DNA from: Utricularia gibba
Lineage: Eukaryota; Plantae; Magnoliophyta
Length of the DNA stretch: 64,000 nucleotides
Assembly (NCBI GenBank): GCA_002189035.1
Contig: NEEC01000019.1
Span: forward strand, 62,001 to 126,000
Reading direction: 5' to 3'
The position numbers were made by a program, and so were the translations under genes. The notes under the pieces were generated by a model. It searched no databases. It saw only the letters and a list, made by a program, of their open reading frames with translations, and was not told where the DNA came from. Shown here piece after piece: positions 10,835-63,700 of this stretch. Each line of letters begins with the position of its first letter. The first letter of the stretch is position 1.

Positions 10835-11758
10835 TCATGCGCTTGAAACCTGTTGACAAGAGAATGCCTGGAACTCACACTTGGGGGAAACGGCCTTCAG
10901 CAATAACCTTGCCGTGTCTTCTTGCTTGACTTCGGCTCCTTCCTTCTCCACCAGCGCCGCCGCCACAATTCTCTCATAATCGCCGCCGTTGCTGCCGACA
11001 ACGTACGCAACCAGAGCACATTGCACCGGTCCGAGACTTGGATTGTAAGCAGCAGATTCGGCGTAGGAGCCTCTGTAGACTACACCTTCGCAGTCCATCA
11101 ACGCGATCCCCGAGGGGCACCCGCTGTATGGAGCGTGAGCCTTGTTTGCAGCTTCTAGCGCTGATTTCGACAATTTTGCAGAGTTGTTTCTGTTCAAGGG
11201 ATCGAGATTCTCGATCTGTGGGGATGCGTTTAAGGCTAATTGATTGTCGTGGTGTTCTAGGAGGAGTGGGGTATCTTCATCGAGCAAATCGTGCGGCCCA
11301 AATGGATTGGGAAGAAATGTGGACAAGGGCATGAAATCAGGGATTTGAATCGAATTGCTTTCGATTTCGTTTTCGAGGATGAGGATCTGAAGAGAGGCGG
11401 AGTGACGGACTTCTTGGAAGAATTGGCGGCAGTGGCCGCATGGGGCGGAGGAAACGGCTACGGCGATGAGGCGATCACAGCCATGAATTGCAAGATTAGT
11501 AAGAAGGAACTGTTCGGCGTGGACGGAGTGATGGAGTGGTAAGCCAGGGAATTCGAGATTGACGCCGATGAAAATGCGACCGTCGGAGCCGAGACCGACG
11601 GCCGCGACGTGATAGTTGGAAACCGGAGGGCGGGCTAAGGATTTGGAGGAATGGAGAAGATGAGGGAGGAGGTGGAGAACCGAAGGGAGGTTCAGAGATC
11701 TCGCCATGGATTCCGCCGCAGAAGCTTGAATCACGAATTCAGATTGACGCCGATCCAT
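10835..11758 (-). CDS. CDA: Cytidine deaminase (two-domain plant type), intronless
   Basis: HHSVHAEQF and SAPCGHCRQF zinc motifs, and HAPYSGCPSG...ESAAYNPSLGPVQ. The likely start is MDRRQSEFVI (ATG at 11758); the track ORF starts 60 nt further upstream. Confidence 0.95.
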   Translation of the reverse strand: MDRRQSEFVIQASAAESMARSLNLPSVLHLLPHLLHSSKSLARPPVSNYHVAAVGLGSDGRIFIGVNLEFPGLPLHHSVHAEQFLLTNLAIHGCDRLIAVAVSSAPCGHCRQFFQEVRHSASLQILILENEIESNSIQIPDFMPLSTFLPNPFGPHDLLDEDTPLLLEHHDNQLALNASPQIENLDPLNRNNSAKLSKSALEAANKAHAPYSGCPSGIALMDCEGVVYRGSYAESAAYNPSLGPVQCALVAYVVGSNGGDYERIVAAALVEKEGAEVKQEDTARLLLKAVSPKCEFQAFSCQQVSSA

Positions 11759-12949: not shown

Positions 12950-14941
12950 ATGATTGCATTGGTGAGGAGAGCGCCACTAGCTCGTGATTTCGGTCGCCTA
13001 TGCCTGAGATGTTTCTCCGCTTCTGTGAAAGGTACTCGTCACAGCTTTTTCAGTCATCTTCCATCAGTAATGATGTGCTTTGTTTGTTTGCAGACCTCGA
13101 GCTGGAGGCTGAAAAGAATTCGTGTTCTAATGGAGCGCGTATGAGCAGAGGATTTATTCATCCGTCCGCCGTTGTTCATCCCGATGCTGTTCTAGGTCAG
13201 GTATGGACATTGCTTCTCCTTTTTCTCTTTTTCTACTGATATACTGTTTTTTTTTTAATCCGATTCAAAATCAGTGTGGCTTGTGAGTTAGTATGGAGAT
13301 GAAATTGAAGTTATATGACATACAAGCTGCTATGCTTTCTCAGGATGTCACCATTGGTCCGTTTTGTACGGTTGGTCCTTTGGTGAAAGTGGGTAACTTT
13401 TGTCGATTGCACCCTGGAAGTCATATATCTGGAGATACGCGATTAGGGGATAACTGCATTTTGATGACGTGAATTTCGATTACCTCCCGTAAATTGTGAG
13501 GCCTGTTTCTTCTGTTGAACAATCAATTTTTCACAGGGGTGCTATTGTTGGTGAGGATATTCCGGGGCGCACAGTTATCGGACACGATAATATCATTGGC
13601 TACCATTGTGTCTTGGGAGCTAAGTGCCAGGATATGAAACACAAGGTTGGCTTTAACTCTACAGTTTTATTGCCTGCTTAAGTGAAGTTGGGTATTCGTA
13701 TTGTTTCTTTCAAAGTAGCTTTCGTTTGCGTCATACCAGCTTGGATTTTTTTTTCGTATGCTGTGCGTTTCTACAAGTGTCACTTCACCATCTCCAGCTG
13801 CCTGGATGTCAAGTGTATTTATGTGTTATTCGTAGCCAGGTAGTGAATGCTTCCTTGATATTGGTAACAATAATGATATCAGAGAATACACATCCATTCA
13901 CCGATCTTCGGTGCCGGATAAAAGAACGGTATGTGATGTGTTGACATCTCTAGCAGATCTTTGTATCCCATTGTAAAAGACCGCTTTTGTTGGTTTTATG
14001 TATGCATGGTGATCATTTTTATTCAACAGATAATTGGCAATAGCAATCTCATAATGGGATCATGTCACATAGCCCATGATTGCAAGGTGGGAAACAACAA
14101 TATTCTAGCCAATGGTACACTGTTGGCAGGGCACTGTGTTATGGAGGTGAACTGTGTAATTCATCAGCATCCTCACTCTGTGACTGCGAGCAGTCTGCTT
14201 CACCAGCTCTGGTGTTCTTGTATTTCAGGACTATGTTCGTACTGCAGGCTCAACTGTCGTACACCAGTTTTGTCAAATTGGCTCATTTTCCTTCGTGGGT
14301 GGGGGATCAGTGGTAAAAAGCTTAAAAACTTCATTGTATCAATCATGATTCACTTTGCCTTCTGAATGGTCAAGGCTACGGGCATTGGAACTCACGTATG
14401 TGTTAACTGAACATGCATGAAGGTTTCACAGGATGTTCCAAGATACACCATGGTATCAGGTGAAAGAGCCGAAATACGTGGACTCAATCTGGAAGGCCTT
14501 AGGCGGAGGGGTTTTTCTGATAAGGAGGTTGGTTGGTTGGTTATAAAATCAGGATCTCTCATATCCTCTACTAATCTCTTGACGAGCGCAAGTGCTGCAT
14601 CCCAGATACGGGCCTTGCGAGCGGCTTATAGAAGAATTTTCATGCCTAGAGATGGAAACAGTCCGAGCATTGAAGAGCGTCTGAAAGAACTGGTATGGTT
14701 ATGCTGAATACTTGCGGTCTTATCATGTTATAGCACCTCCCGTCTTGTACCGTACCTCCTTGGATGCAACCTCCAGGAAAACGATGAGGAACTTGGTCGA
14801 GAGGCCGTCGTGTGCTCTATGGTACGTTCAGTTCAGGATTCATTCGCTGGGGATCGCCGTGGGATTTGCAAGAACAGATCATGGAATCAGGACTTAACTG
14901 AAAAATGCTACAACACTTGTTGCACGCACTTAACCCCCTGA
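12950..14941 (+). CDS. LpxA: UDP-N-acetylglucosamine O-acyltransferase LpxA (hexapeptide repeat, mitochondrial type), 10 exons
   Basis: Exons 12950-13031, 13094-13200, 13344-13468, 13537-13645, 13836-13928, 14030-14146, 14229-14312, 14423-14527, 14606-14692 and 14777-14941, all GT-AG and in frame. Motifs [26 protein letters not shown] and [13 protein letters not shown]-terminus looks like a transit peptide. Confidence 0.93.
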
Positions 14942-17061: not shown

Positions 17062-18998
17062 TCATTCAGATTGTTCACGGGTTCGAGATAGCGTGTGGTG
17101 GGCCTCCTTCACGGCGGTAGTCGTCGTTGCAACTTGCGACCGCACTGCATCTCTCGATGGAACTTGCAGAAATGCTTTCAGAAAATCATAGCAGGTGAAT
17201 CCGATGGCAACCGAAGGCGTGACCTGAAATTTGAACGCGCGCACAATCAGATTCGATCCAGAAAAGTCGGCCTCATAGACTAATGGATGTGCACCGGGCA
17301 AGGGAAAGCCGTAATCACCTTGATGTAGTTGATGCTAAGCCCCGAAAACAGCTGCCTCCATCCTTGAGTTCGAATGATGGTGACCAGAGTTTCCCAGGTT
17401 CCTCTCGCTGCGCTATTCGTGGATTCGGCAACTTGTTGCACCTGTAACGCAGAGTGGCCTGTAAGAAGCAGCTTACGGTTGATTGCAGAATGAATGCGGA
17501 GGGAGGAGCACAGCACCTGCATCTGTCGCCTCACGACATCAAGAGGGTAAGTCAGAGTCTGGCCAAGTAAACCGGCAACCGAGCCGCATACGAGTTTAGC
17601 AGCAACGTCCTTCTCGCGATCCTTGGGAACACGCCTTTTCATTTCCTCATAGAAATAGAATTTGAGTCCAGCGTATGGAAATATTCCATACAGTGTGGGT
17701 CCTGCACAGCAGACCTGAGAATCGGAGAAGATGACCTCATGAAGAAGCAGCCGAAGTGAATGCTTAATACATACCCACGCCTGTATAGAGGCCTCTTAGA
17801 CCACCCTGCCTGTAAATCTTGGAGAAGCAATCAGAAATTCCCTTGTATGCCAGCTGCCTATTTACTGCTTGTGTGGAGGATTCCCCCACCTGCATATGAA
17901 GGTAATGCCCGGTTTTATTGCTGCTGAAGTCTTGGGAGAATGCAGCCCTAGTGTTTTTGGATGCTTGCCTGAAAAGCGAGCCGAGTTCGAACTAAATCAA
18001 GCGGGTAAGTGAAAGCTACGGCTGTTCCTCCAGCAAATGCTCCAGCTATGAGATCAAGCACAGGGCCTCTCTCAACTGTTGGGAGTCCGAAAATTATCAA
18101 TCGACGGTATTCTTCATATGCCATATAATGCAGTGCTGCATAAGGAACAATACGCACAACACTAGCTCCATTCCCTCTACGAGTAAGTAACCATAACTTC
18201 TGTTTGATAAGATAGAAAACGGATGTATACTTGGGAAATCAAAGCTTAGCAGATCAGAAGGGGAGAAAAAATACCGATAAAATCCGAGGAGGCCTTCTGT
18301 TTTTGCGATTTTTGTGAAAGAGCCAGAAAGCCCAAGACTGCGGAATTCAGCCCTCCTGGTCTGGGAAATGCATGAGAAACAATAACTAACATCAAGAAGA
18401 ATCCATCTGCATAAAAGGATCATGACGTTTTCTTTTTTATAGGAATCAGCCACTGAAATAAGCTATATTTGGAACGGTTAGCAAATGCTCAAGGATGCAG
18501 ACCACAGACAACAAACTCTCAGTGAGAAAAACAGTAAACCGTGGCCAAAGCCCACAGTATGATCAAGATGGATAGTTGGCTCTTTTCAAGGGCCCATTCT
18601 CACAAGTTTGAAAAAAATAGAAAAACGCAGAGACACGAAAGCAAGGATCATCAACGAACAACACAAATTGGGTGGGAGAATCATGTTGATAACTGGAAAA
18701 ATCTACCGAATTTGAGCCAATTATATCCAGAGATCAAACAGAAAGCAGGAATCCATGGTCAACATTTCAATCCCCAATTCAGAACCAAATGATCAACAAA
18801 ATACAAACTATCATTTTCCTTCTTTTTCACGATCAAATTCATTACCTGGAACAAGATCTTGATGCGCTCTAGAGGCGCTACGGCAGTCTTTGCAAAACCA
18901 CCCGCAACCCCACCTGCAATAAACTCCTTCACAAAAAGAGGCATCTCGGCAATCAACCCATTCGCCGTAATCATCTTTTCATCTTTTTCTTCATCCAT
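17062..18998 (-). CDS. CoAc: Mitochondrial carrier family protein, CoA transporter (CoAc1/CoAc2-like), 7 exons
   Basis: Exons 18998-18846, 18360-18275, 18176-17969, 17889-17775, 17701-17517, 17441-17319 and 17223-17062. Three PX[D/E]XX[K/R] signatures (APLERIK, YPLDLVR, YPLDVVR), plus [17 protein letters not shown] and [14 protein letters not shown]. Intron 3 is GC-AG. Confidence 0.9.
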
Positions 18999-19236
18999 TG
19001 AAAAACACCGCGCTTTACTTTCAGGAATTACAGCTACTCCCTCACTCAATGCAGGTGATCCACCTGCAAGAAGAAGAGACAAGAGGCGCAGGAGGAGGAG
19101 CCAATTTGAAGTACGAATAAGTTCGTTGCGTATCAAACAAGTTGGGTGTGAGCTTTAACCAAACACACCAAAATTGATTTCATTAAAATGATTAATTAAT
19201 TAATATTACAATTAACCGCTTCAACCGGTCACCGGG

Positions 19237-22994: not shown

Positions 22995-25354
22995 TCAGAT
23001 GGCTGCTGGTGACCCCCCTTTCCTGGGGTCGCTGACGGCCGTAAGCACGCCACGGTGTATGCCATCATCGTGGCTACCACTACCACTGCCACTATTCAGA
23101 TCTTGAACCACAAGCTGGCAAATTGCTCCTGCTGATATAGCTTTCAGTTGGTGCCCTCTTTCTCTCAAGAACTCCTGGCGATCCGAAGCAAGTTCGATAT
23201 GTTCTCCGACTCCCACTGTACAGTTTTCGTACTGCACCACGTTTGGGATGAGCTGGGAATGGAATGTAGGAGGAAAGTGTTATAGCTGCCGAGAAATCGA
23301 ATCATGCGAATGGGCTGCCTTGTTTACCGTGTGGTAGACTCTAGCAGTCTCAACCGCTGCCACAGGATCCATCCCCAGAATAAAATGGTTGATGAAGACT
23401 TGCACAACCGCAGGGATAATCCTGGTGCCCCCACTGCCACCTATCACCCCCGCTAGCTGATCATCCTGACAGAAATAAAAAAGAAAAGGGAAAGCTTAAA
23501 TTTTAGAATAGAGAATGAAATCAGACTACCCCCTTAAGGATACTATATATTGCCTTGAGTACGATTATTGGCATCATGGAAGACAAGGGTCTTTTCTTTG
23601 GGCTTATAAAGTTTGCGGGCGCAGGCGGAAGTTTATCCGGAGCTATCTCCTTTGGTGTGGAGAAATCATCCATTTCATTGTTCAGAACAATGCCTGTGGA
23701 AGGTGAGAGCACCCCTCCTCCAAATGCATAATTCACGGTTGTTGTCATGGACACAGTGTTTCGATCCTCATCCACGATGCAGAAGTGACTTGTTCCGTGA
23801 TCTCTTAGTTGACTCCACCTGCATAAGGCATACATTATACAGTCAGGCATGGCTTTCACAACGGAGAAAAAAAAAGACAAAATATCCAGAAATAAGAAAC
23901 CTTGGTTTATAATATTCAGGAGGGAAGGTAGTGTTATCGAGTATTTTTCCCTTGATTGTATCAGCGAATAATGGAGAGAGCATTTCTGATACTGTTTCAG
24001 CGATGTCCACGAACTGCGGATCCCCCAGATTCATTCTTATGGCGAACATGTGCTTTAGTGCTTCGATAAAACGGTGCACACCAAGAGAACCTTGAGCAGC
24101 ATCTTTACTTTTGTAAGCATCCAAGATATTTAGAATCTGTTTGTCAACCAAAATAAACAGGAATCTGTTTCAACATTAAGAAATCTGGAAGTCGAAAGTC
24201 AAAAGAGAAAAGGGAGCACCATACTTACAAGAGCCATACCAAGAGTTCCACTAGAAGGAGGTGGCATTCCTAAGATCGTGTACCCCATCACATTTACAGT
24301 GACTGGATCACTAACCGTAACTTTATAATCTCTTAGATCCTCCATTGTTAGAATCCCACCAGCTTTTTTCACATCATTGACCAATTTTTCCCCAACTTCC
24401 CCATTGTACAGAGCTTCAGGTCCTCTATCTGCAATGGCTTCCAAGCTATTCCCAAGCTCCAAATTGTAGCAAACATCACCAGTTTTCAACAATTCACCAT
24501 GAGGTACATAGACTTTTCGTAGACCGGGATCGCTCCTTATCTTTTCTACGTTACTTGCAATATGACTACCGAGGTAAGGGCTTACAATGAATCCTTCTTT
24601 TGCAAATTTAATAGCAGGCTGAAATAACGAATACCATGGTAAACGCCCGAATCTCAACCATGCAACATGAAGCCCTGCAATCTCACCAGGGACCCCCATT
24701 GATAAAGCGCCTCTGTACTTTGTAGTTTTATCCTCATCATACATCCCCTGCCATGAAAAAACAAAAATGCATAAACAAACCTTAATCCAAAAGGTTGCTG
24801 CAGCTAAACAAATGGAACAGAGTTATGAACTTGTGAAGCTGCAGCTGGAGCAGTTTCCCTCATATCAATTGCAAGAGCAGCCGAATTCGATGAATTGCGA
24901 ACAACCATGAAACCTCCTCCACCGATTCCACTTGAAATCGGGGAAACAACTCCGAGGCACGCAGCGACGGCAACAGCAGCATCAACTGCGTGGCCGTGTT
25001 TATCGAGGATTGAAATACCGATTTCAGAGCAACGGCCATCGTCAGCAGCAACAACCGCATGCTTTGACTGCACAACATCACTATTAGAGACGCGATCACT
25101 TCGTCCCGAATAAACGTTGATTGATCTTGTTTTAGCTAAGCCTGCACAATTTCACGCCGAAGAATCAATAACTCCAAAACCAGAAGCTTATTCCAATTTC
25201 TCAGGATCCTTGCGTAGTTTAAAAATCAGAACCTACATGAAATTGCGAGTATTAAGACAAGAAACAGGAGAGCTGCGACACGGATCCTTCCTCCTTTTTT
25301 GCCGGAACTCCGATAAACCTCCAGCAGCTCAACGCTTATGTCTTCTCGCGCCAT
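22995..25354 (-). CDS. GGT: Gamma-glutamyl transpeptidase / glutathione hydrolase (GGT4-like, N-terminal membrane anchor), 7 exons
   Basis: Exons 25354-25237, 25141-24831, 24747-24229, 24136-23901, 23818-23554 (or 23530), 23465-23328 and 23252-22995. Motifs VAADDGRCSEIG, DMRETAP, PPPSSG, DHGTSH (Thr nucleophile), LNNEMDDFS, RPLSSM and SDPRK. Confidence 0.95.
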
Positions 25355-27205: not shown

Positions 27206-30200
27206 CTAAGATTGGTTCTTTACAATCCTGACACTGCTGTAGAAGCGTTTGAGGTCTTTGATGGCCTTCTCCTCAATCTGGATTGAGCGAATTGAGGACG
27301 GGCCATCTGTTTCCGGTTTGAACCAACGGCTGACGCCACTGGTTTCTGATGGTGAACCCCCGAGTCCGTTCATCACCGAGAATCCTGTGGTTTTGGTCTT
27401 CGGGCTGTGTGAAACACCCTTTTGCTGCTGCTGCAGTTGTTTTCCCTGGAGAAGGAGAGTTATTATCATCAACGCTTGAGAAAAATATCATGTTGTATGC
27501 CAGAGTAAAAGTAAGAACACTGTTACTTGTTGCAGTTGGATATCCCGGAGTGAAGGCCGGAAGGGACAAGGAGGAGAGGCCGAGGCTGATGCCCAAGGGG
27601 GCGTGCATTTATCTCCATCTGAAGCTGGCGTCTTCCGAATCGAAGTTGTGGGTATTGGAGATGAAGGTCGAACTGAGTTCATTACAAGTTTTGGGCTGGC
27701 TTTAACCTCTGAAATCCCATCAACTTCTTTCTTTCTCGCAGGGATGATCTTCTCCTGGCTCTTGCTCTGCTCATCCTGTATGATACGAAGGGAGGTTGAC
27801 GGATGGCAGGTTTTGGCGCCACCCCATGCTGGGCCGCTTTCCGTTTTGATCACAATCGGAGTCGGAGCAGTGGCCACCATGGGAACATTATTATCAAGGG
27901 CACCACTAAGGAACATGGAGAGTCCACCTTTCCTGCCCTTCTTCTTTGTTGTCGTAGGCTTGCACTGGATTTGCTCGGCTTGTGACTTTTTGCTGAAGGT
28001 TAGAGGGATACTTGGCTCCTGGGTTTCAACAGCAGCAACTTCCTCCTACACAAATATGAAGAAAAAACAGATCACCATAACCATAACCACTACAGCAGCA
28101 CAGTACATATTCAAAGTCTAGGATCCTAGAATTGCGTGCGTATTTACTCTCACAACATCATACGAAAACCCGTGACAATGCAAGTGTTGCTCACCTTGTC
28201 ATCGTGTTGGGCAACAGCACTATCGAGGAAGCTCTTTTCGGTGCTCATGTTGGGACCAATGGCTGGACAATCATGGGACTCATGGTCCTCCTGTACATGC
28301 TTCTTTTTGCTCCTTTGTCTTTGCTTTCTGGATACACCCCTTCTACTACATCTTTCCTCCACAGCAGGTGATGATTTTGGTTCCGAAGTATCCACCAGTG
28401 CACCAAGCTCAGAAAGGCTGCTTTCCAGTTCCGATCGCTTCTGAAGTTTAGTTATCTGCTGGCTATCGAGAAGAAAACCCTTGGATTGCCTTTCCTCAAG
28501 AAGCTCAATCTGCTGCAGCTTTTTCCTCAATGCCCTTATTTGTTTGTCCACACTGTCCATCCCAGCAGTATCCGATTTCAAAAAGCCATCTGATCTCTCG
28601 ACACTTTCAACAATTGGCCTCTTCCCACCATCTCCACGTGTCCTAGGAAACACACAGTCAGCATCCTCTTCTTCACTGTTAATTATTACTGGGAAAGTTG
28701 CCGTAGGAGTTGGCAACTGTCGGTGACTCCACGGCTCAGATGACTTCGAGTCCAATGATTTCTCAAGGTTCACCAAAACATCTAATGAAGTGCCACAAAA
28801 TGCGGGTGATGATACAGCAAGAATGAAGTCAAGGTTACGAATCACAATTTCCTGCATAGAGTCAAATATGAGTCACAGGAAACCTGAAGGTGCTAGCTGC
28901 AATCAAGAGAGTCAGGCAGACAAACCTCACAATGATTCCGAAGATCCTCTGCTCCAAGCGAATCTGCAATTTCCATTAGTTGGATGGCATTACGAGGCTC
29001 AACCAAGTGCTGAGCAGCCACTTTCTCACAAAGACTTTTTAAGGTTGGTGCAGTTTGTTTCTCAGAAAGATGCGAGGTGCTCTGAACTTCAGTATTCACA
29101 ATAATGTCATTTCGAACACTGGTGTGCTCTTGCTCCATGTCATCAAATTCATCCAGTCCATCCCATTTCTCCTCCATCACTGGTTTCTGACAAGATTCAG
29201 CAACACCAGGAACATATACTGGATGATAAAGTGAACTGATTATCAAGAGATGTGTCTCCCCAACAGAAACAGACGTTGCCTTCTTCACACCATGCAACCT
29301 GGTCATTATAGGAGGATCTTCTCTCCCTTTCTTTCCATCCCACATATATATATCACCATATGTGGTAACCACAGCTGTCCAATACTTCCCAGCAGAAACA
29401 CTCACGATACTTTTCCCGCAAAGCAAATATAACTACAGGAAACCAATACCACTCCATGTTCATAGCTTGGAATAAAGAAAACCATGGTAAAAAATAAAAA
29501 ATAAAAACCTGATGGCAACGAAGGTCGGGATCTGGGGAATCCCAGTAGAACAAAGTTCCATCTTCGGCTAAAGCCATGCTGTTTGTCATACCAGCAGCTA
29601 TTGCAATCACATTAAGGCGTTCATGGCGATGAAATTTCAGCAACATGCTTCCGGCCTTTTTTAGATTCCTGGAAATGATGACACGTCTTGGAGACACAAG
29701 CCGATGACCCCATGTGAAAACCTAACATCAATTTCAATACAGTTAAAATATTGAAATTCAGAAAGGAAAAAATAAGTGAGAGACCAACCAGCTAACCACA
29801 TACCTCACCATCAGAGCCTAGAACAATGGTATGGTACTTCGCCGCAGAAACTCCAATTAAGGACTTCCCTTTCAAGTATTCCACCACTCTAGGAGTGTAA
29901 TTCGAAGCAGAGTTGGATGTACCATAGCCAAGCTGTCCCTCTTTATTGCAACCCCATGTGTAAACTTCCCCAGCCTCTGATACGACAGCAGAGTGTTTGT
30001 TTGCTGCAGCAACGGCAACTATTCTAGCCTTCAAGGAACTCACCCTACGGGGTGTTGCTTGGGTGTCAACAGAAGTATATCCAAGTTGCCCCTCTGCCAC
30101 AAGGTTTCTTTTCAAAAAAAAAAAAAAAATAGTGTGGAAATTTTAAGATAAGCATGGAATAAAGGTATTTCCTCATCAAATTCTCCGCCCCTACCCCCTC

Positions 30201-38291: not shown

Positions 38292-41200
38292 CTATATATC
38301 CAAATCGGAACTATTCCAATATTTAATACAAGTTTACTACTGCTTTCTTCCACCATTTCTGCCTCGAGGTGTTCTCCTTTTATTGTCTCTTGCGACAGTT
38401 TTGTTTGCCAAGGTCCCTTCTAGAGTGTTCTGATTGGTGCCTTTGGGGTCAGTATTTGGGTTTGCATGTCTTGTTAAGCACATTGGGTGTGTTGATATCC
38501 CCTCCTCAAGCCCAAAAGCCTTCAGATCCACAAACCCTAGCCTTTGCAGGAACTGTTCATACTCTTCCACTCCCAGCGGCTTCATAAAAAGATCTGTGAC
38601 TTGCAACTTCGTCGATACATACACAGGTTTTAGCAGTCCATTCTTGAAGCACTCTCTCACTACATGGCAATCCACCTCTATATGCTTGGTTCGCTCGTGG
38701 AAAATTGGGTTCTCCGTGATTTGAATCGCTGCCTTGCTATCGCAGTGTAATGGAATTGCTCCATTGTTGGGGTACCCAATTTCTTGCAACAGATACGTTA
38801 TCCATTTCAATTCGCATGTTGTAGTTGCCATGCTTCAGTATTCGGCTTTTGCCGATGATCTTGATATAGTGGCTTGCTTTTTTGTCTTCCAAGACACTAA
38901 AGCTGATCCAGAAAATACAGCAAATCTTGTTAAAGATCGTCAGGTAAGAGGACATGCTGCCGAGTCGGAGTCACAAAACGTGCTGAGAGCCATTGTCCCT
39001 CATGGATAGAACAATCCTTTATGGAGGGTCCCTTGTAGGTATTTTGCTACCTGAATTGCAGCACGTCTGTGTTCTTCGCAAGGGCATTCCATGTACTAAC
39101 TAAGAGTTTGCACGTAATAGGATAAGTCAGGCCGAGAGAAGCCTAAGTAGAGAAGATACCCCACCAACCTTCGGTATCGTAGGGGTGACTAGTTTTCTTT
39201 CCCTGTATTGTCTGAGAATCTGAATCCCCTGAGCAGTGAGAGCAGCTATCCATTATCCTTAGATAAGCTTAAGTCTTTGATGATAGACGTCGCATATCTT
39301 GTCTGACTGATAAAGATTCCTTTTTCATTTATGTGAATTTGTAGCCTGAGATAATAGCTCGCCTCTCCTAGGTCTTTGATTGTGGACCAGCTGTGAAGTG
39401 CACTCTTCACCGCTTGAATTTCTTCGAGTGAATTTCTAGCAAGTAGTAAATCGTCTACATAGACTAATTGAACAGAGATTTGCTCGCCGTGTCTTTTGTA
39501 GAACATGCATAGATCATGATGGCTTTTTATTTAACCGATGGTTTCTAATTTTGAGGTAAGCTCACAGTTCCATTCTCTTGAGGCCTACTTTAATCCATAA
39601 ATAGGTTTTAGTAGCTTGCAAATCTTGTTACCTGCAAGGTAACCAGGTGGAGGTTTCATGTAAACCTCTTCTTCTAATTTACTGTGAAGGAATGCATTAT
39701 TCACATCCACCTGATGCAAAAACCAATCATGCGCCAAACTGTCAAAGCCAATATTAACCTTAAACTCGTGGCCTTGGCTGTAGGTGAGAAACTCTCTTTA
39801 AAGTCTTGGCCCTCCTTTTGGGAATAGCCCTGGGCTACCAACCATGCCTTCCTCCTCTCCAATGTCCCATCGGGATTTAATTTGTGTTTATAAACTCATT
39901 TGCTGCCTACAAGGTTGCGATTTGGAGGGGATCTACAAGAACCCAAGTTTGATTGTCTTGAAGAGCCTTCTCCTCAGCTCTCATGACCAACTGCCAACAT
40001 GGATCGTCCCTGGCCTCTTCAAAGGTATGGGGCTCTGGTTCCACTGAATTCCAATCCTCTGTCATGCATACATAATCTTGCATCCAAAGAGGCTGCACGG
40101 GCCGTCGTTGACCTCTTCTGATGGTTGGTGTCTCAGGTGGTGATTCAATGATATCATCGTTCTCATTGGAATAACCATGCGATACCTCTGGCTCTTCTAG
40201 TATAGGATTTGGTTGGGATGCTTCTGGTGAGTATTCTGATGCTGCATCACACGGTGATCCCGGGTCTGTTCGAAAGAGTTGAGTGTCCAATAGCAGTAGC
40301 ATTCCAAAATCCTCACTCGCTGTAGTACACGCTTTATATGGGAAGAATTCTTCATAGAAGATGACGTCTCTTGAGACTAGCACGGTACGTTGCTCTTGAT
40401 CAAATACTTCATATTCCTTTTTTTCAGGAGCATAGCTTATGAAGATCCCTTTCTTTCCTCTTGCACCAAATTTGTCCAGATTCTTGAGAGGGTCTGTATA
40501 GAAGCACAAACAACCAAAGGTTTTAATTGTTGATAAATCTAGTTGTTTCTTGAATAGGTACTCCACGGATATCTTGCCTCCCAAAGTGGTCTTGGGCAAG
40601 TGATTGATGATATACATTGCGGTCAGCAAGGCTTCGCCCCAAAGGTAGGCAGGTGCATTTGACTAGTACATTAAGGCCCTTGCAACCTCCAGAAGATGTT
40701 TATGCTTCCTCTCTACGCGCCCATTTTGCTCTGGTGTATGTACGCAGCTAGTGTAGTGTAGGATGCCTTTATTTCCAAAGAATTCCTTGAGCTCTTTGTT
40801 GATAAATTCACCACCGTTGTCACTCTGGATGATTTTTATCTACTTGCTGAATTGCCTTTTGATCTTGGTGACCAGATTCTTGATCACAGGGATGGCTTCA
40901 GACTTGTACTGGAGTAGGCAAGTCCAAGTTGCATGGCTCACGTCATCCACCACAGTAAGGAACAACCGAGTATTGGTAATGGTGGATACCTTGTAGGGTC
41001 CACCACATCAATGATTGGCTCTAGTACAAGTGGGAGATTGTTAGTGTATGTGTTCTAGAGACAATCAACTCATTGGCAAATCTTATCTTATGATATTTAC
41101 TTTGAATTGTGATCAAATTTATATCATTGATAAAATCCTCTACTTAATCTATGTGCTATAGAAATTATGATGAGATCATAATGTGAGATTCTTCAAGCAC

Positions 41201-43944
41201 TCATGATCAAGTTAAAAACTCCCTAGCTAGAGTATTTGTGAAATGAGGATATCACAAATACGGATAAGCTCGCACACATTGAGTTCCCTAAATTGTTTAG
41301 ACAATGGTTCTCACAATTGATGTAATGAGATTACTAGAACCTATGTGTGGGTGTCGATTAGAGAATCGATTCACTGGATGACTCATCTTTGAGATGCTAC
41401 TATGGGAAGCTAACCAAGTGTCAGTAGCAAGATCTCGAATATGACAGCCGTGCAATTAAGCTTAGACTTGAGGTCAACAAAGTTATCTTGATCTTAGGCT
41501 CACATTTTCGCTCATTACTAATGAGAGCCTAACCATGGCTTGCCTAGTATGGATGAGTAGGGATGTGACTCCTTAAGGTTGGAGATATTTGATTGATCAA
41601 TAAAGGATTCATCACTCATGTTAGCGATGAGATCATATCTCAAGTAATTGCATCAAAGCCTAACAGTAAGTCCTGGGCCCAAGGTAATGACACTCGAATT
41701 GTTTGAGTAGGTCATTGAGTGTTAGTGCTTGAATGCAATTATAAGTTCGATACATCAGAAAGACACACACCCATGTTCTAGTATCGAATGAGATATAAGT
41801 ATGATGAAAGCTGTTCATTGCATGGTGGCTGGTCATGGAAAGACTCAATCAGTTCACCTGATTATTCTTACATCTTGGGGATCATGATATGTTGCTAGAC
41901 ATCACTCATGATCGATAATGATGGATTTGATTAATTAAGAGTTAATTAATAAATCCATTATTACGGCCTTGATTGAAGAAGCCTATAGGGTCATACACAA
42001 TAGTGGAGTCACTCAACGATATAAAATAGAATGACACAATTACATGAAATGTAATTGGTAAAGTGGATAAATTAAATTGAGAGTTATTTTGAGATTAATA
42101 TTGATTAAATTTAAAATAAAAGATCATATATAAATAAGATTTGGAACATATACATATCTCCACAAGATAAGATCTTTACAGAGATATGATTTGATATGTT
42201 ATCATATATCTATCAAAAAGATTTAGATCTTAAGATCTGCTCCAAGGAGGCGTTTTTCTCTACTAGCACCTGAGGAATTCGACCAGCATTCAAGAGCCTT
42301 GAGAAGGTTATCGACGGAGTGCTCCACGTGTGGATACCATAGAGGCCGTCTGTTATTGGCGGCTCGTGAACAACGGAGTCATCTGAAAGGTATTTTAGAA
42401 TCCCTTTGTCTAATGTATACCGTATTCCAAGATCTGCGTTGGGGGTTTCTGAAAATTTTTAAAATTCCGCTGCTTTTGAGACATACGATGTCTACGAGAA
42501 ACCCTACACCGTTACCCCTATATTAATAATCCAAACACTGTTGTTAAAAAACAATGATGTAGTCTCTTTACCTGAGATGTGCATATGACTGGTGGAATGC
42601 TCCTGTCCTTCTTCAGACTTTGTGTGCACAGAATGAAAGGTCCGTGCATTAGTCTTTAGTTCCATGATCTTCTTGAGTTGATCTTCCCATACCTTACTCC
42701 AATTATCTCTATGTATTTCTTTGAAGCGATCTGACACCCCATGGATGAGGAAGCATGTATCATGAGTGTGCTCATCAAGGTGACATAAGTCAAATTTCCT
42801 TGGTATTTTTGGGTGGGTGGATGTTCCCCCCCATTCCCAGGTTTTTTTTTTCACTTGCACCAAGTCTCCTTTTGTTTTGTACGATCATAACACTATGTTG
42901 GATTTGCTTGCTCATGGATTCAATGATTTGTTTGTGTTCTTCTGTTGTCAACACCATGGATAATACGTCATTGATAGGTGGGAGTGACTTCATGAGAAGA
43001 ATTTGACTCCGTGTGATTTCAAACTCTGGACCCAAGCCCATAAGAAAATCAATGACAAAGGTGCTCCTAAAAATTTCAGACACTGGTACTTGCATCCCAT
43101 ATGAGCAGATCGATGGAGGTAAGGCAGCTGTGTAGTCTTACTACAACACCTTCCTTTTCATATAGTAATCACTGACTGATAGGTTCCCCTGTACTAGCAT
43201 CGCTAACTCTCTTTGTATGTCATACAGAAGTGGTCTGTTACTTGTCCTGTACTTTTCTTGGAGCTCCAACTAGAGTTCCCTAGAAGTCTCACAGTTGGTG
43301 AAGGATGCATGCAGCTCTGGAGAGATGGAACTCATCAGCCAAGCCAACGCCATGGCATTGGCTTGAAGCCAGTCATCATAAAACGGGGATGACTCTTTAG
43401 GTGTTGGCAATCGCCCGTCAATTAGGGCCATCTTCTTCTTGGCTGAAGAGCAATCCGTATCCCCTTGCACCAAGCATTATAGTTTTTTGGAATCAGTAAT
43501 GTGGAGACAAGGGATTGGTTAGGATTCTCTGAACCATAGAGCTTTACTATGCTTGCAACTACTTTTGGAGTGAGTTGAGGAGTAGAGTAGCTCGAGTGTT
43601 CACTAGGAACAAAGTCCTCATCTCCCGGTGTACCATGATTCTCACTGGAGGTCATGGCGGTAATCAACCTCGCTCTAATATCATCACAAAGAAAGAGTGT
43701 ACAAGCGCACAACATGCGTTTCATTTATGTTGACTTATATATCTAAACCGGAATGGTTCCAATATTTAATACAAGTTTCCTCTTGCTTTCTTCCACCATT
43801 TCTGCCTCGAGCTATTCTCCTTTTACTATCTCCTACGACTGGTCAGTTTTTTCTACCAAGGTCCCTTCTAGAGTGTTCTGATCGGTGCCTTTGGGGTCAG
43901 CATTTGGGCTTGTATGTCTTGTTAAGCCATTGGGTGTGCTGATA
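38292..43944 (-). mobile_element. Ty1/copia LTR retrotransposon (Ale/Retrofit-like gag), degenerate; 5' LTR 43944-43684, 3' LTR 38497-~38292 (truncated)
   Basis: Degenerate Met PBS TGATATTAGAGC at 43683-43672 and PPT GGGCTTGAGGAGGGGA at 38513-38498. Gag LVSTLLIPKNYNAW, WIINIGVT, integrase GPYKV...LTVVDD and FGCLC, RT LVYVDDLL, and RNase H CELKWITYLL...HERTKHIEVDCH. Confidence 0.9.
41011..42508 (+). mobile_element. Angela-like Copia 3' LTR (41039-42508, TG...CA) with its PPT and ~28 bp of internal sequence, nested antisense in the Ale-like element
   Basis: PPT AAGTGGGAGAT at 41028-41038 directly precedes TGTTAGTGTATG. The LTR ends GAGAAACCCTACA. It is homologous to 1186-2612 and 52857-54321. 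Confidence 0.88.
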
Positions 43945-49989: not shown

Positions 49990-51400
49990 CGTATATTCGT
50001 TAGTCTCTTTGTTTTACCATAACAAACACTTCACACCTTCCCAATGTTATTTATCACAATTATAGCATATGCTATATCTGGTCGAGTGCAAATATAAGGA
50101 ATATCAGAGAACTAACAATAGAGGAGTAAGATACCTTGCTCATCATTTCTTTTTCAATTTCAGTTTTTGGTGACATTTGAGAAAAGTATTTCAGATGTCT
50201 AGGGAGAGGTCTCAAGGTTCTTTTGACTCTGTCTCTAGCGATGACTATTCCCAAAATTTTCTTGGTTTCGCCCAAGTTTTTGATTTCAAAGACAGCGGCC
50301 ATTTCTCTTTTCATATCTTGTATCAGTGTTTCGTTCGGATTGGCTATCATCATATCATCAACGTACAGCAGCAAAAAAATCATGGTTCTGATTTTGCTTC
50401 TAGTAGGCACAATGATCTCCTTCACATCTTTTAAATCCAGCCTTTTTCATGAAGGTGTTGAACTTGTAATATCATTGATGAGGTGCTTGTTCAAGTGCAT
50501 ACAAACATTTTCTAAGCCTACACACAAGATCCTCTTTTCCATGTTCGAAAAATCCTTCTACTTGTTTCATATATAGCTCTTCTTTCAGGTCGTGAGGTAG
50601 AAATGCCGTTTTTATGTCTAACTGTTCAAGTTTCCAATCAAAGTGGGTAGTTAGGGACAATATAAGCCTTATTGTGTTCAACTTCACGACAGATGAGAAG
50701 AATTTTTCATAGTCTATGCCTCTCTTTTGCCAATAAGCCTTTATCACCACTCTTGCTTTATGTGTAACACTTCCTTATGAATTTTGTTTCAGCTTGAATA
50801 TCCATTGGTTTTCGACTGGTTTCAGTAGGTAACTATCAAATGAGTCCATGGCTTCCTTCACCGTCTACGGTTCTCCTTCTTCCATTATTAGGCAATATCA
50901 AGCATATCCTCTCTACTTAGGTCATATTCAGATTTAGGATATCTTGATGAGGGAACATGTAGTCTTGACGATCTTCTCAGGTTTGGAACCCCTATTTGAT
51001 CTTACATCAAAAGGCTCACAGGTGGTTGTACCTAGCTTTTCAATTTTTGTTGTAATTTTTTTTTGATTACATCATGAATATTTTAATCATTTCTTTTAAA
51101 GAACTTCCAGAACTCCCTCCAGCATTGCCTTGATTTAAGACTCTAAACTATTGTTGGTTCTATAGGTTTTGGTGACCCATTGTTGAGCTCTCCCCTTATA
51201 ATTTTCATTGTTATTCTAATGAAAATTTGGATGATCTCTACAACCTGAGTTGTATGTATTTGAAAATGGATTATACTTCTTTCTCTGTTAGAGATCTAAA
51301 CATCCCATAGCCTTAACATACTCTTTTTTAAATAAATTTGGTTACTTGTCAACAACATGTCCTATTCTGTGATAGTTTCTATACAACATATTCTTAGCCT
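49990..51400 (-). mobile_element. Ty1/copia (Tork/Tnt1-like) RT fragment
   Basis: GIDYEKFFSSVVKLNTIRLILSL...LEQLDIKTAFL..LKEELYMKQVEGF...LVCRLRK (50750-50472) and LLLYVDDMMIA...KNLGETKKILGIVI (50425-50072). Confidence 0.8.
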
Positions 51401-57540: not shown

Positions 57541-59479
57541 AATTTATAGATGGAAAGACGACAAAAAAGGATGAAGATATTGATATATTATATATGTTAG
57601 TACTAGTAGACAATTAGTGTGTAAAGTGTTTCCCATATATTATAGACGAAAACCTAGTTATGTCTTTTGAGTTTTGGGGTCTTCTTCCCCTAAAGGCCCA
57701 AACCTCGTTTGAGGTTTTCATTGGCTCTATCCTGAGAAATTATAACTCGTAGAAAAGTAGATGTAAAGAGAGAAGTTTTCATTTATTCCATTTGCTATAC
57801 ACATTTCTTTTTCTAAATACCTCAAGTCTTCATGAAACAAAATCTCTATTTCATTCCTTAAAACATCTTTAGTAGTTTTCAGAAATGCTGATGTAGTTTT
57901 CCAGAAATCATTATTATTTTTACGGAAATCAATAATTTGGGGAAACCCCATTCTATGGAAACCAAAAAAAGGAAGTCTGGTTTCCTGTGACGTTCGCAAG
58001 AAAACCTCACTATGTTTTTTTATTTTTCTATTTGTTTTCGAAAATTGATAAAACAAATTAGGAAACTTAGTAAAGTAAACTTAATAAAGAAAAGACACGT
58101 AAGCATTTTCGAAAATTACTAAAGATACTCTTATAAAGTAACTTAAAGTGTTAAACACAATGCTAATTAATGGAGTATATGAATATGTTGGGTTTGAGTG
58201 CTAATATACTTGACCTGAGTCGAAAGTGAATGGGACAAATATTTTATGTTTAAACCCATTCCAAAAACCAAATATTTAGAACCCAAACCCGTCAAACATT
58301 TTGATCTATCAAATTTGAATCCCGAAATTGGTTCTTGCACAAACCTAGTCAAGAAGTTGTATTTTTTCTCTTTTCTTCTTCAAGATAAGATTCATTATCT
58401 TGAGGCATATTTTCATTAGTGAACCATGATAACAAGCGTGCTACTACCTTAATTTTAATTTTCTCCATCAACAAGATTGGCTGCATAAGCTTGGGGTGCG
58501 AATCTAAAAAAAACTACCTACTGATTTTTCTTAAAATAATCTCCCATTTAATCGATAATTAAAAAACTTAGTAATTAATAATGATGTGATTAAAGAGAAT
58601 GACCAACTTTTATAAAAAAATAGGTTGATTGTTTGATAAAAAAAACAGTACAACAAAAAGAAAGTTTCTTTCAAAACGAGATAATTGTATATATGACCTA
58701 AAAATTATGAGTTTAGAATATAATGGATCTAGAAATTTTCATAACGTACCCATAAAGTTTCGTGAATGGGCATATTTGATCCATAAGTTTGATGAATTGA
58801 CATATTTGACTTGCGGATTTTTGTTACTTTAGAACATACTCATTAATAATGATAAATTTAATCCGATAAAATTTCGATTTTGGCATATTTGACCCAAATA
58901 GTTTATCAGTTTGGCATATTTGACCTACATAATTGAACCCGGTTCAATAATAATGATATTGTATTAATATATATTTAATTATTAAAATATTTAAAAAATT
59001 TTACTTTTGATATTTGACCCTAAATTGAATTGGGGATGAGCCTCTTCTCCTCTTATGGGTGAAGGCGAACTACCCAGAGATTGGGAGAAGTGATTCCCAC
59101 ACAACATAAAGGTGTGAAGTTGCTCTTGATAATCATTCTCTTAAGGTATGGCTTTTGTGATTTTTTTCGCTTCATTGCATTATTGCATTTGCTTCTTGTT
59201 CGCCTGGTTGCTATTGTTGAACTTTTGTGCGAAAAATCGGTTGGTTTGGGAATGATAGTTTTCTTTGGCATTAGTGATGCTGAACAATTCTGTTGATATT
59301 TACTATTTGTCGTTTTCATAGTTTTAGGGTTGTATATCTCTCTGCAGTGTGTGAAGTGGGACAGTTTTGTACATGTTGATATTCAAATAAAGCATCGTTT
59401 GCTCTCTACCTTATTGGCTGCATACAAGATGCCCTCAAATAACTTGTAGTTATCTGCAACCTTGATGTTATAAATGCAG

Positions 59480-59769
59480 GTATCAGAGCAGCACCACTGC
59501 CATTTCAGTTGATAAATATGATAATAAACAACTGTCTATATAGATTGTTTTGCTTCAGATGACTAGCTGGACATGCATGTTATGCAATGGGTCCTGTTTT
59601 TTATGCTAACTTGGTGACAGCACAACTGGGTCAGTGGATAAAGTTTGAGCAAAATTGGAAAATGACCTTTAGCCAAGTGGGTGGTTCCAATAGTACAACT
59701 TTGGCTCTGGTTGTTTCTCGGATGCCTCTATTTGAAAAAAAAGTTAGAAACTCCATGTTCCTCTGTTAA
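59480..59769 (+). pseudogene. AGO4-like: Captured 3' fragment (last two exons plus intron) of an AGO4-clade ARGONAUTE
   Basis: Exons 59480-59511 and 59588-59769 splice in frame to YQSSTTAISVVGPVFYANLVTAQLGQWIKFE...VRNSMFLC*. From memory, the AtAGO4 C-terminus is YQRSTSAISVVAPICYAHLAAAQLGTFMKFE...VANSMFFC*. The 32-nt exon and the intron position fit AGO4-clade gene structure. Confidence 0.8.
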
Positions 59770-60472
59770 CCAGAACTAACCCATCATACATAACCTATCT
59801 TTTTAGAGTTAAATATCATTATACTCGATTTTTCTAGCCTGTCATTTCTCTTCTACTTGGATTCACTTACACTAGGGATGAGGGTGCTTATTTTTGCTGA
59901 GATCGTTTGATGAGGCAAATTGAAGTAGAAGTTAGGGACACCAATGGAAGCCTAACTTGTTCGTTCCTATCATATTTTAGGGTCATTACTTGCTTGATCC
60001 TGAATCGCTTGAATTAGAACACCCCTTGTTTGTAATTAATTTTCAAAATTTGTTGGTTATTTTTTAGTCGGTACTAAGTGCTATTATGTTTCTATAGATG
60101 ATACGAAATTGGTTCGTTGAAGATGACGTTCGTGAATTTGCAGAATTGATGGAGATTCCTCATTGATTTAGGAGCGGCCTAGTAAGCAAACTTTCCAAAA
60201 AAAATGTAGACATTGAACTTGTTTGTTGGTATGAACTTGTAGACTTTGTTATTTTTCTTTGACACTATTTATGCATTATATTTGCTTCTTTAAATTTTTA
60301 AACAAACATTATACAAACAATCATAATTATGGATGCAATCCCTATTCGCTATCCAGAGGTACATACAATCCTTTCTAATAACAAATATATGTTTATTAAA
60401 ATATAAATAATGTAAATATGTTATTTATTAAACCATATAATAAATATGAAAGTTTCTTAGTTTTTAATTTTA

Positions 60473-60750
60473 TTAGCATTCGATCCTTAGTTATACTTTG
60501 GATGGAGTGTGTATTTTTATTTTATTCATTTTAATTTGTATTCGATTCTTGGTTATGATTCGAATCGAATGCTATATTTTTTATTTTAATATTTTTTTAG
60601 CATTTGATCCTTAGGTATAATTCATATCGAGCATATATTTTTTATTTTAATATTTTTATTAGTATTTGATCCATAGGTATACTATGGATTGAGTGCATAT
60701 TGATTTATTTTAAATCTTAATTAGCGTTCAACCCTTAGGAGCAATTTAGA
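60473..60750 (+). repeat. ~62-bp degenerate tandem repeat, ~4.5 units, inside the MULE
   Basis: Units start TTAGCATTCGATCCTTAG (60473), (G)TATTCGATTCTTGG (~60537), TAGCATTTGATCCTTAGG (~60598), TTAGTATTTGATCCATAGG (~60659) and TTAGCGTTCAACCCTTAGG (60721). Confidence 0.75.
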
Positions 60751-63700
60751 TCGTACATACATGACAATGCCACACGGGCATGGTTTACGCATAAACCACG
60801 ATGGATATTCGGATTGACTGTTGTGCCCATATCTACAAGACACTTATCGATCAACATTTACTTCAAAAAGTATTCAATTTTTTTAAAATTTTGATAAACT
60901 TTATAGGTTAATTATGCCAATTCGATAAACTTTGTAGGTTAAATATGCAGATTTAACCAGCTTTAAGGGTCAATAATGTCAATTTATTAAACTGTAAGGG
61001 TCAAATATGTTAAATTATTGGGTTGAATATATCAACTGAACACTATACATGGGACCAATAGTAAACTTATTAGGTCAAACGGACTTCGTTGTAAAGTTTT
61101 ATAACTTTTCGTTGGATCAAATATGTCCCGTTATAATATTTTATAGGTCAAAAGTATCAAAACTAAATTTTTTATGGGTCAAATATATCATGCAAAAATT
61201 TTTTACAAGTCAAAATGTCATTTTGTAAATATTTTGGGTCACATATGCGGAAATGGTACCAGAGCAGGTCAAATATGTAAAACCGGTCATTTTGTTATGG
61301 GTCAAAAATGCCAAAATTTCAAAATTTTAGGTCAGAAATGCTATCACCCCATTTCAAAACTTATCTTCTTTTCTTATGGCATTTTTTTTATTCTTTTAGA
61401 TACACGATTGGTCAATATATTTGATAGTTGGGGTTTTTCTCAATATCGTTGTTATTTCCTCGAAAATTGTTCTTATATTTGTTATTTAAGAACAAGTGTA
61501 GCTACACCTAGACTGATCTTTCATATCAAAAAGTTTTTCATACGATGGTGTTTACAACTTTTGATAGGAAAAACAATGGATATTGGAGGATCAAATACTG
61601 CATGTTCCTTTATTAGAGGAATCTTAAAGATGTCTTATGTTGTGCATAAATGAAATTGCTAGAAAATAATGCATGGGAAAAGGTGTGCTTGAGAATGAAA
61701 TGCTCATATAGGCAAAACAAGAGGAAAAAGGTTTGGATAGGAAGTGCATAGAAAGAGTAGAAAAAATCCTTTAGCCCTTAGATGTCAGGCATAGCATGCA
61801 AAAGTAAATAAAGTTCAAAAAGAGCCATGGGCATAGTGAAGGCTTAGAAAAGAAATGCTCAAAAGATATTTTCTCAAAGTTAAAATTTGAACATAGAGAT
61901 GGATATCAATACAAGCCAACTCAGCTGGTCAAAAACCTATGATGGGTTGGCCACCCCATCATGAGTTGTAGATTAAATCAAGTACAAATTGGCCTTGATG
62001 GAGGTCAACTTTAAGTATAATAATGTTTTTTATATTATATAAAAAATAAATAAGAGGTGATCTTTCAATCTTTATACTATCTATGATTCGGATTGTCAAA
62101 TGAGGAATGGTATGAGATTCATGAGAGTTGAGGCCTCACGGGCAATGTGGCTTGGGCTTAGAATCGATTTGGAGAATTTTATGGAAGATGAAGAGAGACG
62201 AGAGAGGAATTAAATGCAAAGGTTGATAAAGTCTAGCAGAGGCATTGCTATTGTTGCCATTGATCATTGTGTGAAAATATGGCCATTACACGTCCAAATC
62301 ACTACCTTAGTTTGATTTTGTGTTTTATCAAGAGTGAAATTTCATGGAGTCGATGACGAATAAGAAGAGGAAAATGATGAATGGAAAAGAGTTTTTACAT
62401 CTAAAGTCGTTTAAAATAGCCGCATGTAAGCTCAAGTTAATTTAACAAGAGGTAAAAAAAGTAGTCCAACTATCCCCATACTCCTAGGTTTCAACTTTAG
62501 AATTTATTTTTTAATTAAAAAATAGCATCCCACAAAAATTGATTGTACCCACTAAAAATGAACTTGGTTCAAACCTATATGATACACATTCGAGTTGAGA
62601 CCCAAGTTAGGGTTGGGTCAGCAAGTTGACCACACCATTTTCCACCTGCACCCACACAAAAGTGCACACAAAAATTAACGTAGGTTGGAAGTGTTCGAGA
62701 AGATGCTCCAATAAAGAAGGCTTGTGGCTTGGGTGTGTAGTGCCCGAAAAAGACTATAGACATAGTGAGAACTCATGAAGAATGTTCTGCTGATAAAGGG
62801 CTGGGCATATAGCGCCCGTAGAATGTTGTCTCAATATATGCTCGAGAGCTGAGCGCCCAAGAACAACCTCCTGCATGTTGAAGATCCAAGAATGAGATCT
62901 AACATAGCAAGGATATGAAAAACAATTGCATGTATATTGAGATAGACTCTTGCATTGTACTCATTGAGCAAGCAGGATCACATATGCAAGAGCCCAAAAG
63001 CTCTTGAGAATCAAATAAATGAAAAATGCCATATTCTTGAAAGACTTAATTTATGGCTACCATCATTGTTTGTATTGAAACTTGAAAGATATCACTTTGC
63101 TATAAGAATTGAATGTAGGGTAAGAGTGTTGATCCTATTAATTTAAGTGAGAGATTAATGAGACTCAAGTCAATAGCCATATATTTTACAAACATCTGGG
63201 AAAGCTCATTCAATGGTCATATCGACCTTTGGTTGGTATGGAAAACACAAGCGTTTAACCTTTACATAATTAGGCTCATTCCTTGCTTCAAAAAACGTCA
63301 AATTAAAACAATGCTCTTTAATTTTTTCTTCTCCTTTCCTCTAATATATTGGTTTACAAGAGTTTGTGTAATATGTGCAGCATAGCATAAAAAATGCTAC
63401 CGAAGACACATCACAATAAGTGATGCATTTGTTGGTGAACTATACCCCAAGAGGTAGATGCTCTTAGTAAATAATGAATTTGTTGTTGATGATAAAAGTT
63501 TTTTTCACAAATATTGAAATTTTTTTGTGTTGGGTAGGTTTTAGTGTTTTTGTGAAAAGATAAAAATACATAATTTTGGTAATTCAGAAAGCCCAAAACC
63601 TAGGTGTTGCTTGCACTTGAGCTATAAGTTTCATTGAAATGCAAAGTGATCTTCAAGAATGCGAGCTTGGTTTGGACTCCAAAGATAGAAATCAAAAGGA

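Follow-up and report, generated by a model that had tools for sequence, protein, structure and literature searches.

Utricularia gibba carries a probable Pack-MULE with the 3′ end of an AGO4-clade Argonaute gene

Introduction

The Pack-MULEs of rice, maize, Lotus, and Arabidopsis are Mutator-like elements (MULEs) with long terminal inverted repeats (TIRs), a 9–11-bp target-site duplication (TSD), and no transposase, and they harbor intron-containing fragments of host genes that are amplified together with the element. Comparable features are found in a 2,673-bp element at 58678–61350 of a 64,000-nucleotide stretch of the Utricularia gibba genome (GenBank assembly GCA_002189035.1, contig NEEC01000019.1, positions 62,001 to 126,000 of the forward strand; referred to as the window), the inverted arms of which are built from a 13-nt motif. 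The element is probably a non-autonomous Mutator-like Pack-MULE that has captured the 3′ end of an AGO4-clade Argonaute (AGO) gene and belongs to a multi-copy family; the copy in the window has decayed, and its AGO piece is most likely an inert passenger. This assignment is made because the length of the TSD, the termini, and the arms are in keeping with a non-autonomous MULE, because the passenger is an AGO4-type C-terminus with an intron and without AGO exons outside of the element, and because the element is multi-copy, other copies having the same termini in different flanks.

Mu killer, an inverted duplication of MuDR, triggers silencing in maize. In rice, miR820, which is borne by a CACTA transposon, targets the de novo methyltransferase gene OsDRM2 (Nosaka et al. 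2012, PMC3459959). Small interfering RNAs (siRNAs) of captured fragments in maize generally left the expression of the donor genes unchanged, according to the passage of PMC12974517 in which Muyle et al. 2021 is cited. Pack-MULEs shuffle gene pieces by the thousands, so that one more case is ordinary. The sole unusual point of the family described here is that its passenger, present in many copies, is the tail of an Argonaute that guides anti-transposon DNA methylation. Full-text literature searches yielded no published case of an AGO4 fragment in a Pack-MULE.

Boundaries, termini, and arms of the element

A first-pass annotation, made by a model from the sequence alone, had delimited the element by a perfect 9-bp direct repeat and by inverted modular arms. 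Both are borne out. The direct repeat, TTTCAAAAC, is located at 58669–58677 and 61352–61360 and matches at 9/9 positions, for which the chance at fixed positions is ~1e-5 (our own arithmetic, based on the local base composition). Alignment of the two element ends places the right terminus at 61350 and not at 61351. The A at 61351 is therefore part of the duplication, and the TSD is extended to 10 bp, ATTTCAAAAC. The right copy at 61351–61360 is a perfect ATTTCAAAAC, whereas the left copy at 58668–58677 has C at 58668 in the window versus A in the orthologous contig of sequencing run X4, such that the duplication is 9/10 in this assembly and 10/10 with the X4 allele, which comes from another accession. 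A duplication of 9–11 bp is the signature of Mutator elements.

The left end of the element begins with GAGATAATTGTATATATGACCTAAAAATTATGA, and the right end, reverse-complemented, reads (T)GGGGTGATAGCATTTCTGACCTAAAATTTTGA. The two ends are ~75% alike over the terminal 34 nt, but only with the right terminus set at 61350. At its left terminus, GAGATAATTG, the element is identical to maize MuDR over the opening 10 nt of the TIRA, the start of which is taken from the primer TIRAF, GAGATAATTGCC... (PMC2563033). Sites similar to this terminus are common in the window, with 22 at ≤1 mismatch versus 8.2 ± 2.7 expected (0/100 shuffles reach 22) and one exact match at 42700–42709 on the minus strand. 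None of those outside of the element has the 13-nt arm motif alongside.

The arms are about 350 and 460 bp long, and their inverted relation is confirmed by motif matches and inverted pairs. All 12 of the 12 matches to the 13-nt motif GGTCAAATATGCC that are found in the window at ≤2 mismatches fall within the arms. At ≤3 mismatches, six matches on the minus strand lie in 58686–59019 and 10 on the plus strand in 60906–61342. The inverted pairs I1, I2, I5, I6, I13, and I15 are likewise consistent with inverted arms. The element must be non-autonomous, as no transposase is encoded between or within the arms: Pfam matches are lacking in all nine internal open reading frames (ORFs) scanned, and the longest ORF of the element is a 159-aa read-through of the right arm. 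A Mutator transposase is also not encoded by any of the twenty large ORFs scanned in the window.

Identity of the Argonaute passenger

The passenger consists of a 32-nt exon ending in YQSSTTAISV, an intron remnant, and a terminal exon ending in VRNSMFLC*, an organization that had been proposed from the sequence and is upheld by both coordinates and homology. The codon split across the intron (G + TG) yields Val, and the terminal exon encodes (V)GPVFYANLVTAQLGQWIKFE...VRNSMFLC*. Over 39 nt, the micro-exon shares 85% identity with an AGO4 gene of Lamiales type, and the position of the intron and the upstream acceptor CAG are conserved relative to real AGO4 genes. On the basis of tblastn with the plus-strand frames of three AGO4 loci, including a Logan contig that spans the ArgoL1 region to the stop codon, the similarity has E values of 1e-11 to 1e-13 and is confined to 59461–59766 in the whole window.

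When the 60-residue piece was searched against 1.84 billion proteins, eight matches with E < 1e-3 were obtained. Six are AGO4-type C-terminal pieces (E 5e-5 to 7e-4, 37–44% identity), one of which is named ‘Protein argonaute-4 [Dionaea muscipula]’ and another of which sits 5 kb from a potato Argonaute gene of 913 residues. The remaining two are low-complexity repeat proteins. A profile search extends this set to 172 AGO4-type tails, none more than 45% identical to the window tail, and every named one is an argonaute 4, 4B, AGO4-2, or 16. The profile that includes the window piece matches residues 930–988 of the 988 of Arabidopsis AGO10 (PDB 7sva, E 3e-4), and the alignment reaches the last residue of AGO proteins, i.e., it is end-to-end with the AGO tails. 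The best match is thus an AGO C-terminus, in agreement with the first proposal. The type of the tail is that of AGO4 (..KFED.SETSS..LP.L...V..SMFFC) and not that of AGO1/10, on which all credible matches agree.

Other searches did not recover the relationship. As a single-sequence query against the PDB, the piece did not reach AGO10 and gave only chance matches to aminopeptidases. The 60-aa ORF has no Pfam match because the piece lies past the Piwi model. A word-indexed protein search with the same ORF returned no candidates, and therefore no close relatives of the ORF are on record. A family-specific exon word and a double arm motif had no match in metagenome scans.

Fragment and Sesamum angustifolium AGO4 tail have QLGQW.KF, MP, and VRNSMF in common. 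These residues fit the Lamiales-like affinity of a cytidine deaminase encoded elsewhere in the window. In potato, locus L001:6001-6825 (GCA_020169555.1 CM035017.1) encodes a ‘hypothetical protein’ of 114 aa, in which an AGO4 PAZ-linker exon is fused to an AGO4 terminal exon, and it lies 5 kb upstream of the full-length 913-aa Argonaute gene. Tail fragments of AGO4 thus arise on their own in other plants too.

Copies of the element in the genome

The abundance of the element was evaluated with contigs assembled from three DNA runs that are labelled as this species (X1, X4, and X6), aligned to 58300–61800 at ≥80% identity. The summed depth of the X4 contigs is 11–28 in both flanks versus 115–450 inside the element and 330–430 over the AGO exons; across the element, AGO exons included, contig depth is 10–40 times the flank level. 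A total of 646 X4 contigs match with 80–100% identity: 72 at ≥99%, 150 at 95–99%, 215 at 90–95%, and 209 below 90%. Single positions of the terminal exon are covered by 11–14 different contigs. Nine X4 contigs enter unrelated and mutually different sequence just behind 61350 (agreement 0.46), and the alignment of one further X4 contig starts exactly at 58678 after 43 unrelated letters. The raised depth and the shared termini in differing flanks show that the element is repeated together with its AGO piece and that other copies end at these termini elsewhere in the genome. Within the window, both the element and the AGO piece are single-copy by self-BLAST.

The insertion in the window is itself shared. 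X4 and X6 contigs bridge its junctions, and it is therefore common to all three DNA samples. Three DNA contigs share the AGO part alone at 82–84% identity (59473–59821, 59627–59900, or 59641–59981) and may represent older carriers or donor-like loci.

The X6 contigs differ from the window in a strongly skewed manner: C>T (230 places) and G>A (149) far outnumber T>C (33) and A>G (37). The pattern looks like that of a bisulfite-converted or heavily deaminated library, and X6 could yield the methylation over the Pack-MULE family if mapped properly.

Organization and decay of the window copy

The coordinates of the features are collected in Table 1.

Table 1. Features of the element and its target-site duplication (window coordinates)
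Feature	Position	Strand	Remarks
Left target-site duplication	58668..58677	.	CTTTCAAAAC in the window; ATTTCAAAAC in the orthologous X4 contig
Left arm, long degenerate TIR	58678..59023	+	terminus GAGATAATTG; 6 motif copies of the CATATTTGACC type; ~30-nt subrepeats
Internal sequence of unknown origin	59024..59479	+	also in other family copies (raised depth); no Pfam match; ends with the conserved acceptor CAG
AGO4-type 32-nt micro-exon (..YQSSTTAISV)	59480..59511	+	homology to AGO4 genes
Intron remnant	59512..59587	+	intron position homologous to real AGO4 genes
AGO4-type terminal exon with stop codon	59588..59769	+	frame open
3′-untranslated region (UTR)-like DNA past the stop codon	59770..59981	+	present in other copies (three contigs, raised depth)
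Segment with high-copy repeat	59982..60889	+	missing from at least 2 other family contigs (joint 59981->60890)
Right arm, long degenerate TIR	60890..61350	-	reverse-complemented terminus GGGGTGATAG; 10 motif copies; ~31-nt subrepeats
Right target-site duplication	61351..61360	.	ATTTCAAAAC

Both splice sites of the last intron are lost in this copy. The donor of the micro-exon is dead (GT->AT at 59512–59513), as is the acceptor of the last intron (AG->AA at 59586–59587). In the terminal exon, the His of YAHL, a catalytic residue of the PIWI tetrad, is replaced by Asn, such that YAHL becomes YANL. With YANL and the dead donor and acceptor, the piece is therefore a dead fragment and not a gene.

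The tail has also diverged considerably. Its identity to the potato, Dionaea, and Logan AGO4 tails is 39–42% for protein and 56–61% for codon-aligned DNA, compared with 61–64% and 65–70%, respectively, for these three among themselves, and it is 38–45% in amino acids to all real AGO4 tails compared. All other copies seen have G at 59736. They also have T at 59761, which gives the consensus SMFFC, in contrast to SMFLC in the window; the window copy therefore carries private changes.

A repeat at about 60385–60800, unrelated to the family, lies within the element and includes a 62-nt tandem array at 60467–60753. Its summed contig depth is ~231,000 in X6 and about 500–1,800 in X1 and X4, and the ends of its other genomic copies correspond to 60385 and 60800. 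The repeat could be a satellite, or else a small element of high abundance, that this copy captured or that is nested in it.

Origin of the element and alternative explanations

It is proposed that an ancestor of the family acquired AGO4-clade genomic DNA comprising the 32-nt exon before the last, the intron that follows it, the terminal exon, and some of the 3′ flank, probably by template switching or gap repair during transposition. The family would then have been amplified with its passenger, mobilized in trans by a transposase that is encoded elsewhere and that presumably binds the arrays of subterminal 13-nt motifs. The window copy would have inserted with a 10-bp target duplication long enough ago to be shared by three independent samples and would later have decayed through loss of the splice donor and acceptor, private substitutions, and the addition of an unrelated high-copy repeat.

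An element of a different DNA-transposon superfamily, or two solo arms that were combined, with the 9–10-bp repeat being atypical or coincidental, is quite an unlikely alternative. Degenerate subterminal repeat arrays such as those of the arms are also a design of hAT and CACTA elements, the two terminal inverted repeats are no more than ~75% alike, and no matching transposase was found in the window. However, a 10-bp TSD fits Mutator (9–11 bp) and not hAT (8), CACTA/PIF (3), or Helitron (none) elements; the terminus is identical to that of MuDR over 10 nt; CACTA and TC...CTRR signatures are absent from the element ends; and the same two terminal bases end the other copies. The AGO-like piece might instead be left over from an AGO gene that degraded in situ, or be a segmental duplicate, and lie by chance between unrelated repeats; an isolated AGO4 tail does adjoin a real AGO gene in potato (L001). 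Further AGO exons, the presence of which outside of the TIRs would have pointed to such a pseudogene, are found nowhere else in the 64 kb, even with a whole AGO4 gene as the query. Because no AGO exon occurs beyond the arms, an in-situ pseudogene is excluded. The fragment is moreover repeated in the genome together with the arms, and the TSD and termini are precise. This explanation is essentially refuted and retains next to no probability.

Several points weigh against a Pack-MULE with a captured and decayed AGO4 fragment. Capture from the host gene would follow from homology to the AGO4 genes of other plants, and the putative superfamily assignment is drawn from the TSD length and 10 terminal bases, with no matching autonomous MULE seen. 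The family is estimated at tens of copies from contig depth, which is not a copy number. An empty site is not seen either: no joint that skips 58678–61350 is reported for the three DNA samples, all of which have the insertion. The 60-codon frame is still open, whereas only 1.6% of shuffles stay open, and about half of the depth of the other copies has a 1-nt insertion at 59676. By our own estimate, an initially open frame would survive such divergence fairly often. With this survival expected and the insertion at 59676 present in other copies, there is therefore no sign of coding constraint. Taken together, the TSD, termini, arms, passenger, and multi-copy family support a Pack-MULE with the captured 3′ end of an AGO4-clade gene, as the first-pass annotation had suggested.

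The question of counter-silencing

The same annotation had raised the possibility that siRNAs made against the element feed back on the host AGO4-clade gene. In its functional form, this hypothesis states that the 24-nt or 21–22-nt siRNAs of the family match the 3′ exons or UTR of the host gene and lower its expression or methylate it. By analogy with the CACTA-borne miR820 and OsDRM2 of rice, such counter-silencing would dampen RNA-directed DNA methylation (RdDM) to the benefit of the transposon. It is considered quite unlikely. The source of the fragment is indeed a silencing effector, and many copies of it have been made; other copies are nearer to the AGO4 consensus (e.g., SMFFC); the diverged contigs with the AGO part alone (82–84%) could be donor-like; and precedents are provided by PMC3459959 and by Muyle et al. 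2021 as cited in PMC12974517. The latter also counts against the hypothesis, as captured fragments in maize are stated there to be generally without effect on the expression of the donor.

Action of siRNAs on a host AGO4 gene needs near-perfect matches of 21–24 nt. The fragment was compared with five AGO4 loci, all from other plants, namely those of Sesamum angustifolium, potato, Dionaea, and two Logan contigs, one of which has a tail 90% identical to that of Sesamum. Conserved blocks are 73–86% identical over 28–67 nt, and the longest exact coding-strand words are 11–13 nt; with the Lamiales-type genes, shared exact words are likewise no longer than 13 nt. An inverted copy of 59480–59981 is present neither in the element nor in the window, and no Rfam family, including any that is microRNA-like, matches the element. 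An 85-Mb transcriptome assembly of the species (run X10) contains no contig at ≥80% identity to the 3.5-kb stretch, and no RNA run is listed as containing 59040–60200, both results being subject to filter caveats.

For the window copy, a siRNA feedback on the host AGO4 gene is unsupported and unlikely because of the heavy divergence, the dead splice sites, the exact words of at most 13 nt, and the lack of an inverted duplicate and of an RNA contig. The AGO piece in this copy is a non-functional passenger, which in all likelihood does not affect the host AGO4 gene at present, and it is described better by the reservation, made with the original proposal, that it may be no more than a relic. It is very unlikely that the family as a whole, through copies nearer to the donor, is a standing source of Pol IV/RDR-dependent siRNAs that hit the 3′ exons or UTR of a host AGO4-clade gene. 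If this were the case, the family would be a transposon-encoded brake on RdDM, similar to miR820/OsDRM2 but aimed at the effector Argonaute.

Surroundings in the window

The element is embedded in AT-rich sequence with few genes, and ordinary host-gene exons are 30 kb away. These exons, at 13961–14365, 17280–19136, 24199–24744, and 28893–29426, correspond to a hexapeptide transferase, a mitochondrial carrier, a gamma-glutamyltranspeptidase, and an RCC1-like repeat, respectively. A type I phosphodiesterase/nucleotide pyrophosphatase is encoded at 9018–10546 (+) by two overlapping ORFs in different frames (Pfam positions 1–188 and 194–342), a split that could reflect a short intron or a frameshift. 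An intronless cytidine deaminase of 307 aa is located at 10838–11758 (−). Its best matches are all from Lamiales at only 65–70% identity, by which the host is placed among Lamiales-like asterids, and its exact product is not on record in the protein collection, from which the host's own family therefore seems to be absent. Retrotransposon remnants occur at 38529–40629 (−), with a retroviral-type SH3 domain and pol-like similarity to a potato locus, and at 50072–50425 (−), with a Copia-type RVT_2 fragment.

Comparison with known systems

The Utricularia element differs from known Pack-MULEs in its arms, which are arrays of ~31-nt subrepeats with a 13-nt core and not a simple long TIR, and in its passenger, which is the tail of an RdDM effector of the AGO4 clade. 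The window family and the miR820/OsDRM2 system of rice are alike in that a DNA transposon harbors sequence related to a gene of the host silencing pathway. In the rice system, which is the nearest functional precedent, a hairpin precursor gives rise to a defined small RNA, and cleavage and regulation of the target have been demonstrated. In contrast, the captured piece forms no hairpin in the window, and the match of the window copy to the AGO4 genes compared is far below the level for targeting.

Mu killer and the conflict over captured-gene siRNAs in maize share with the window family the involvement of Mutator sequences and of captured pieces as potential sources of trans-acting siRNAs. Mu killer acts via a long inverted repeat of its target, whereas in the window element the arms alone are inverted and the AGO piece would be located in the loop. 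The window copy is a relic and gives no support to feedback. Should a match to the host gene persist in younger members, the family would offer a natural test of whether captured fragments of silencing genes feed back on silencing.

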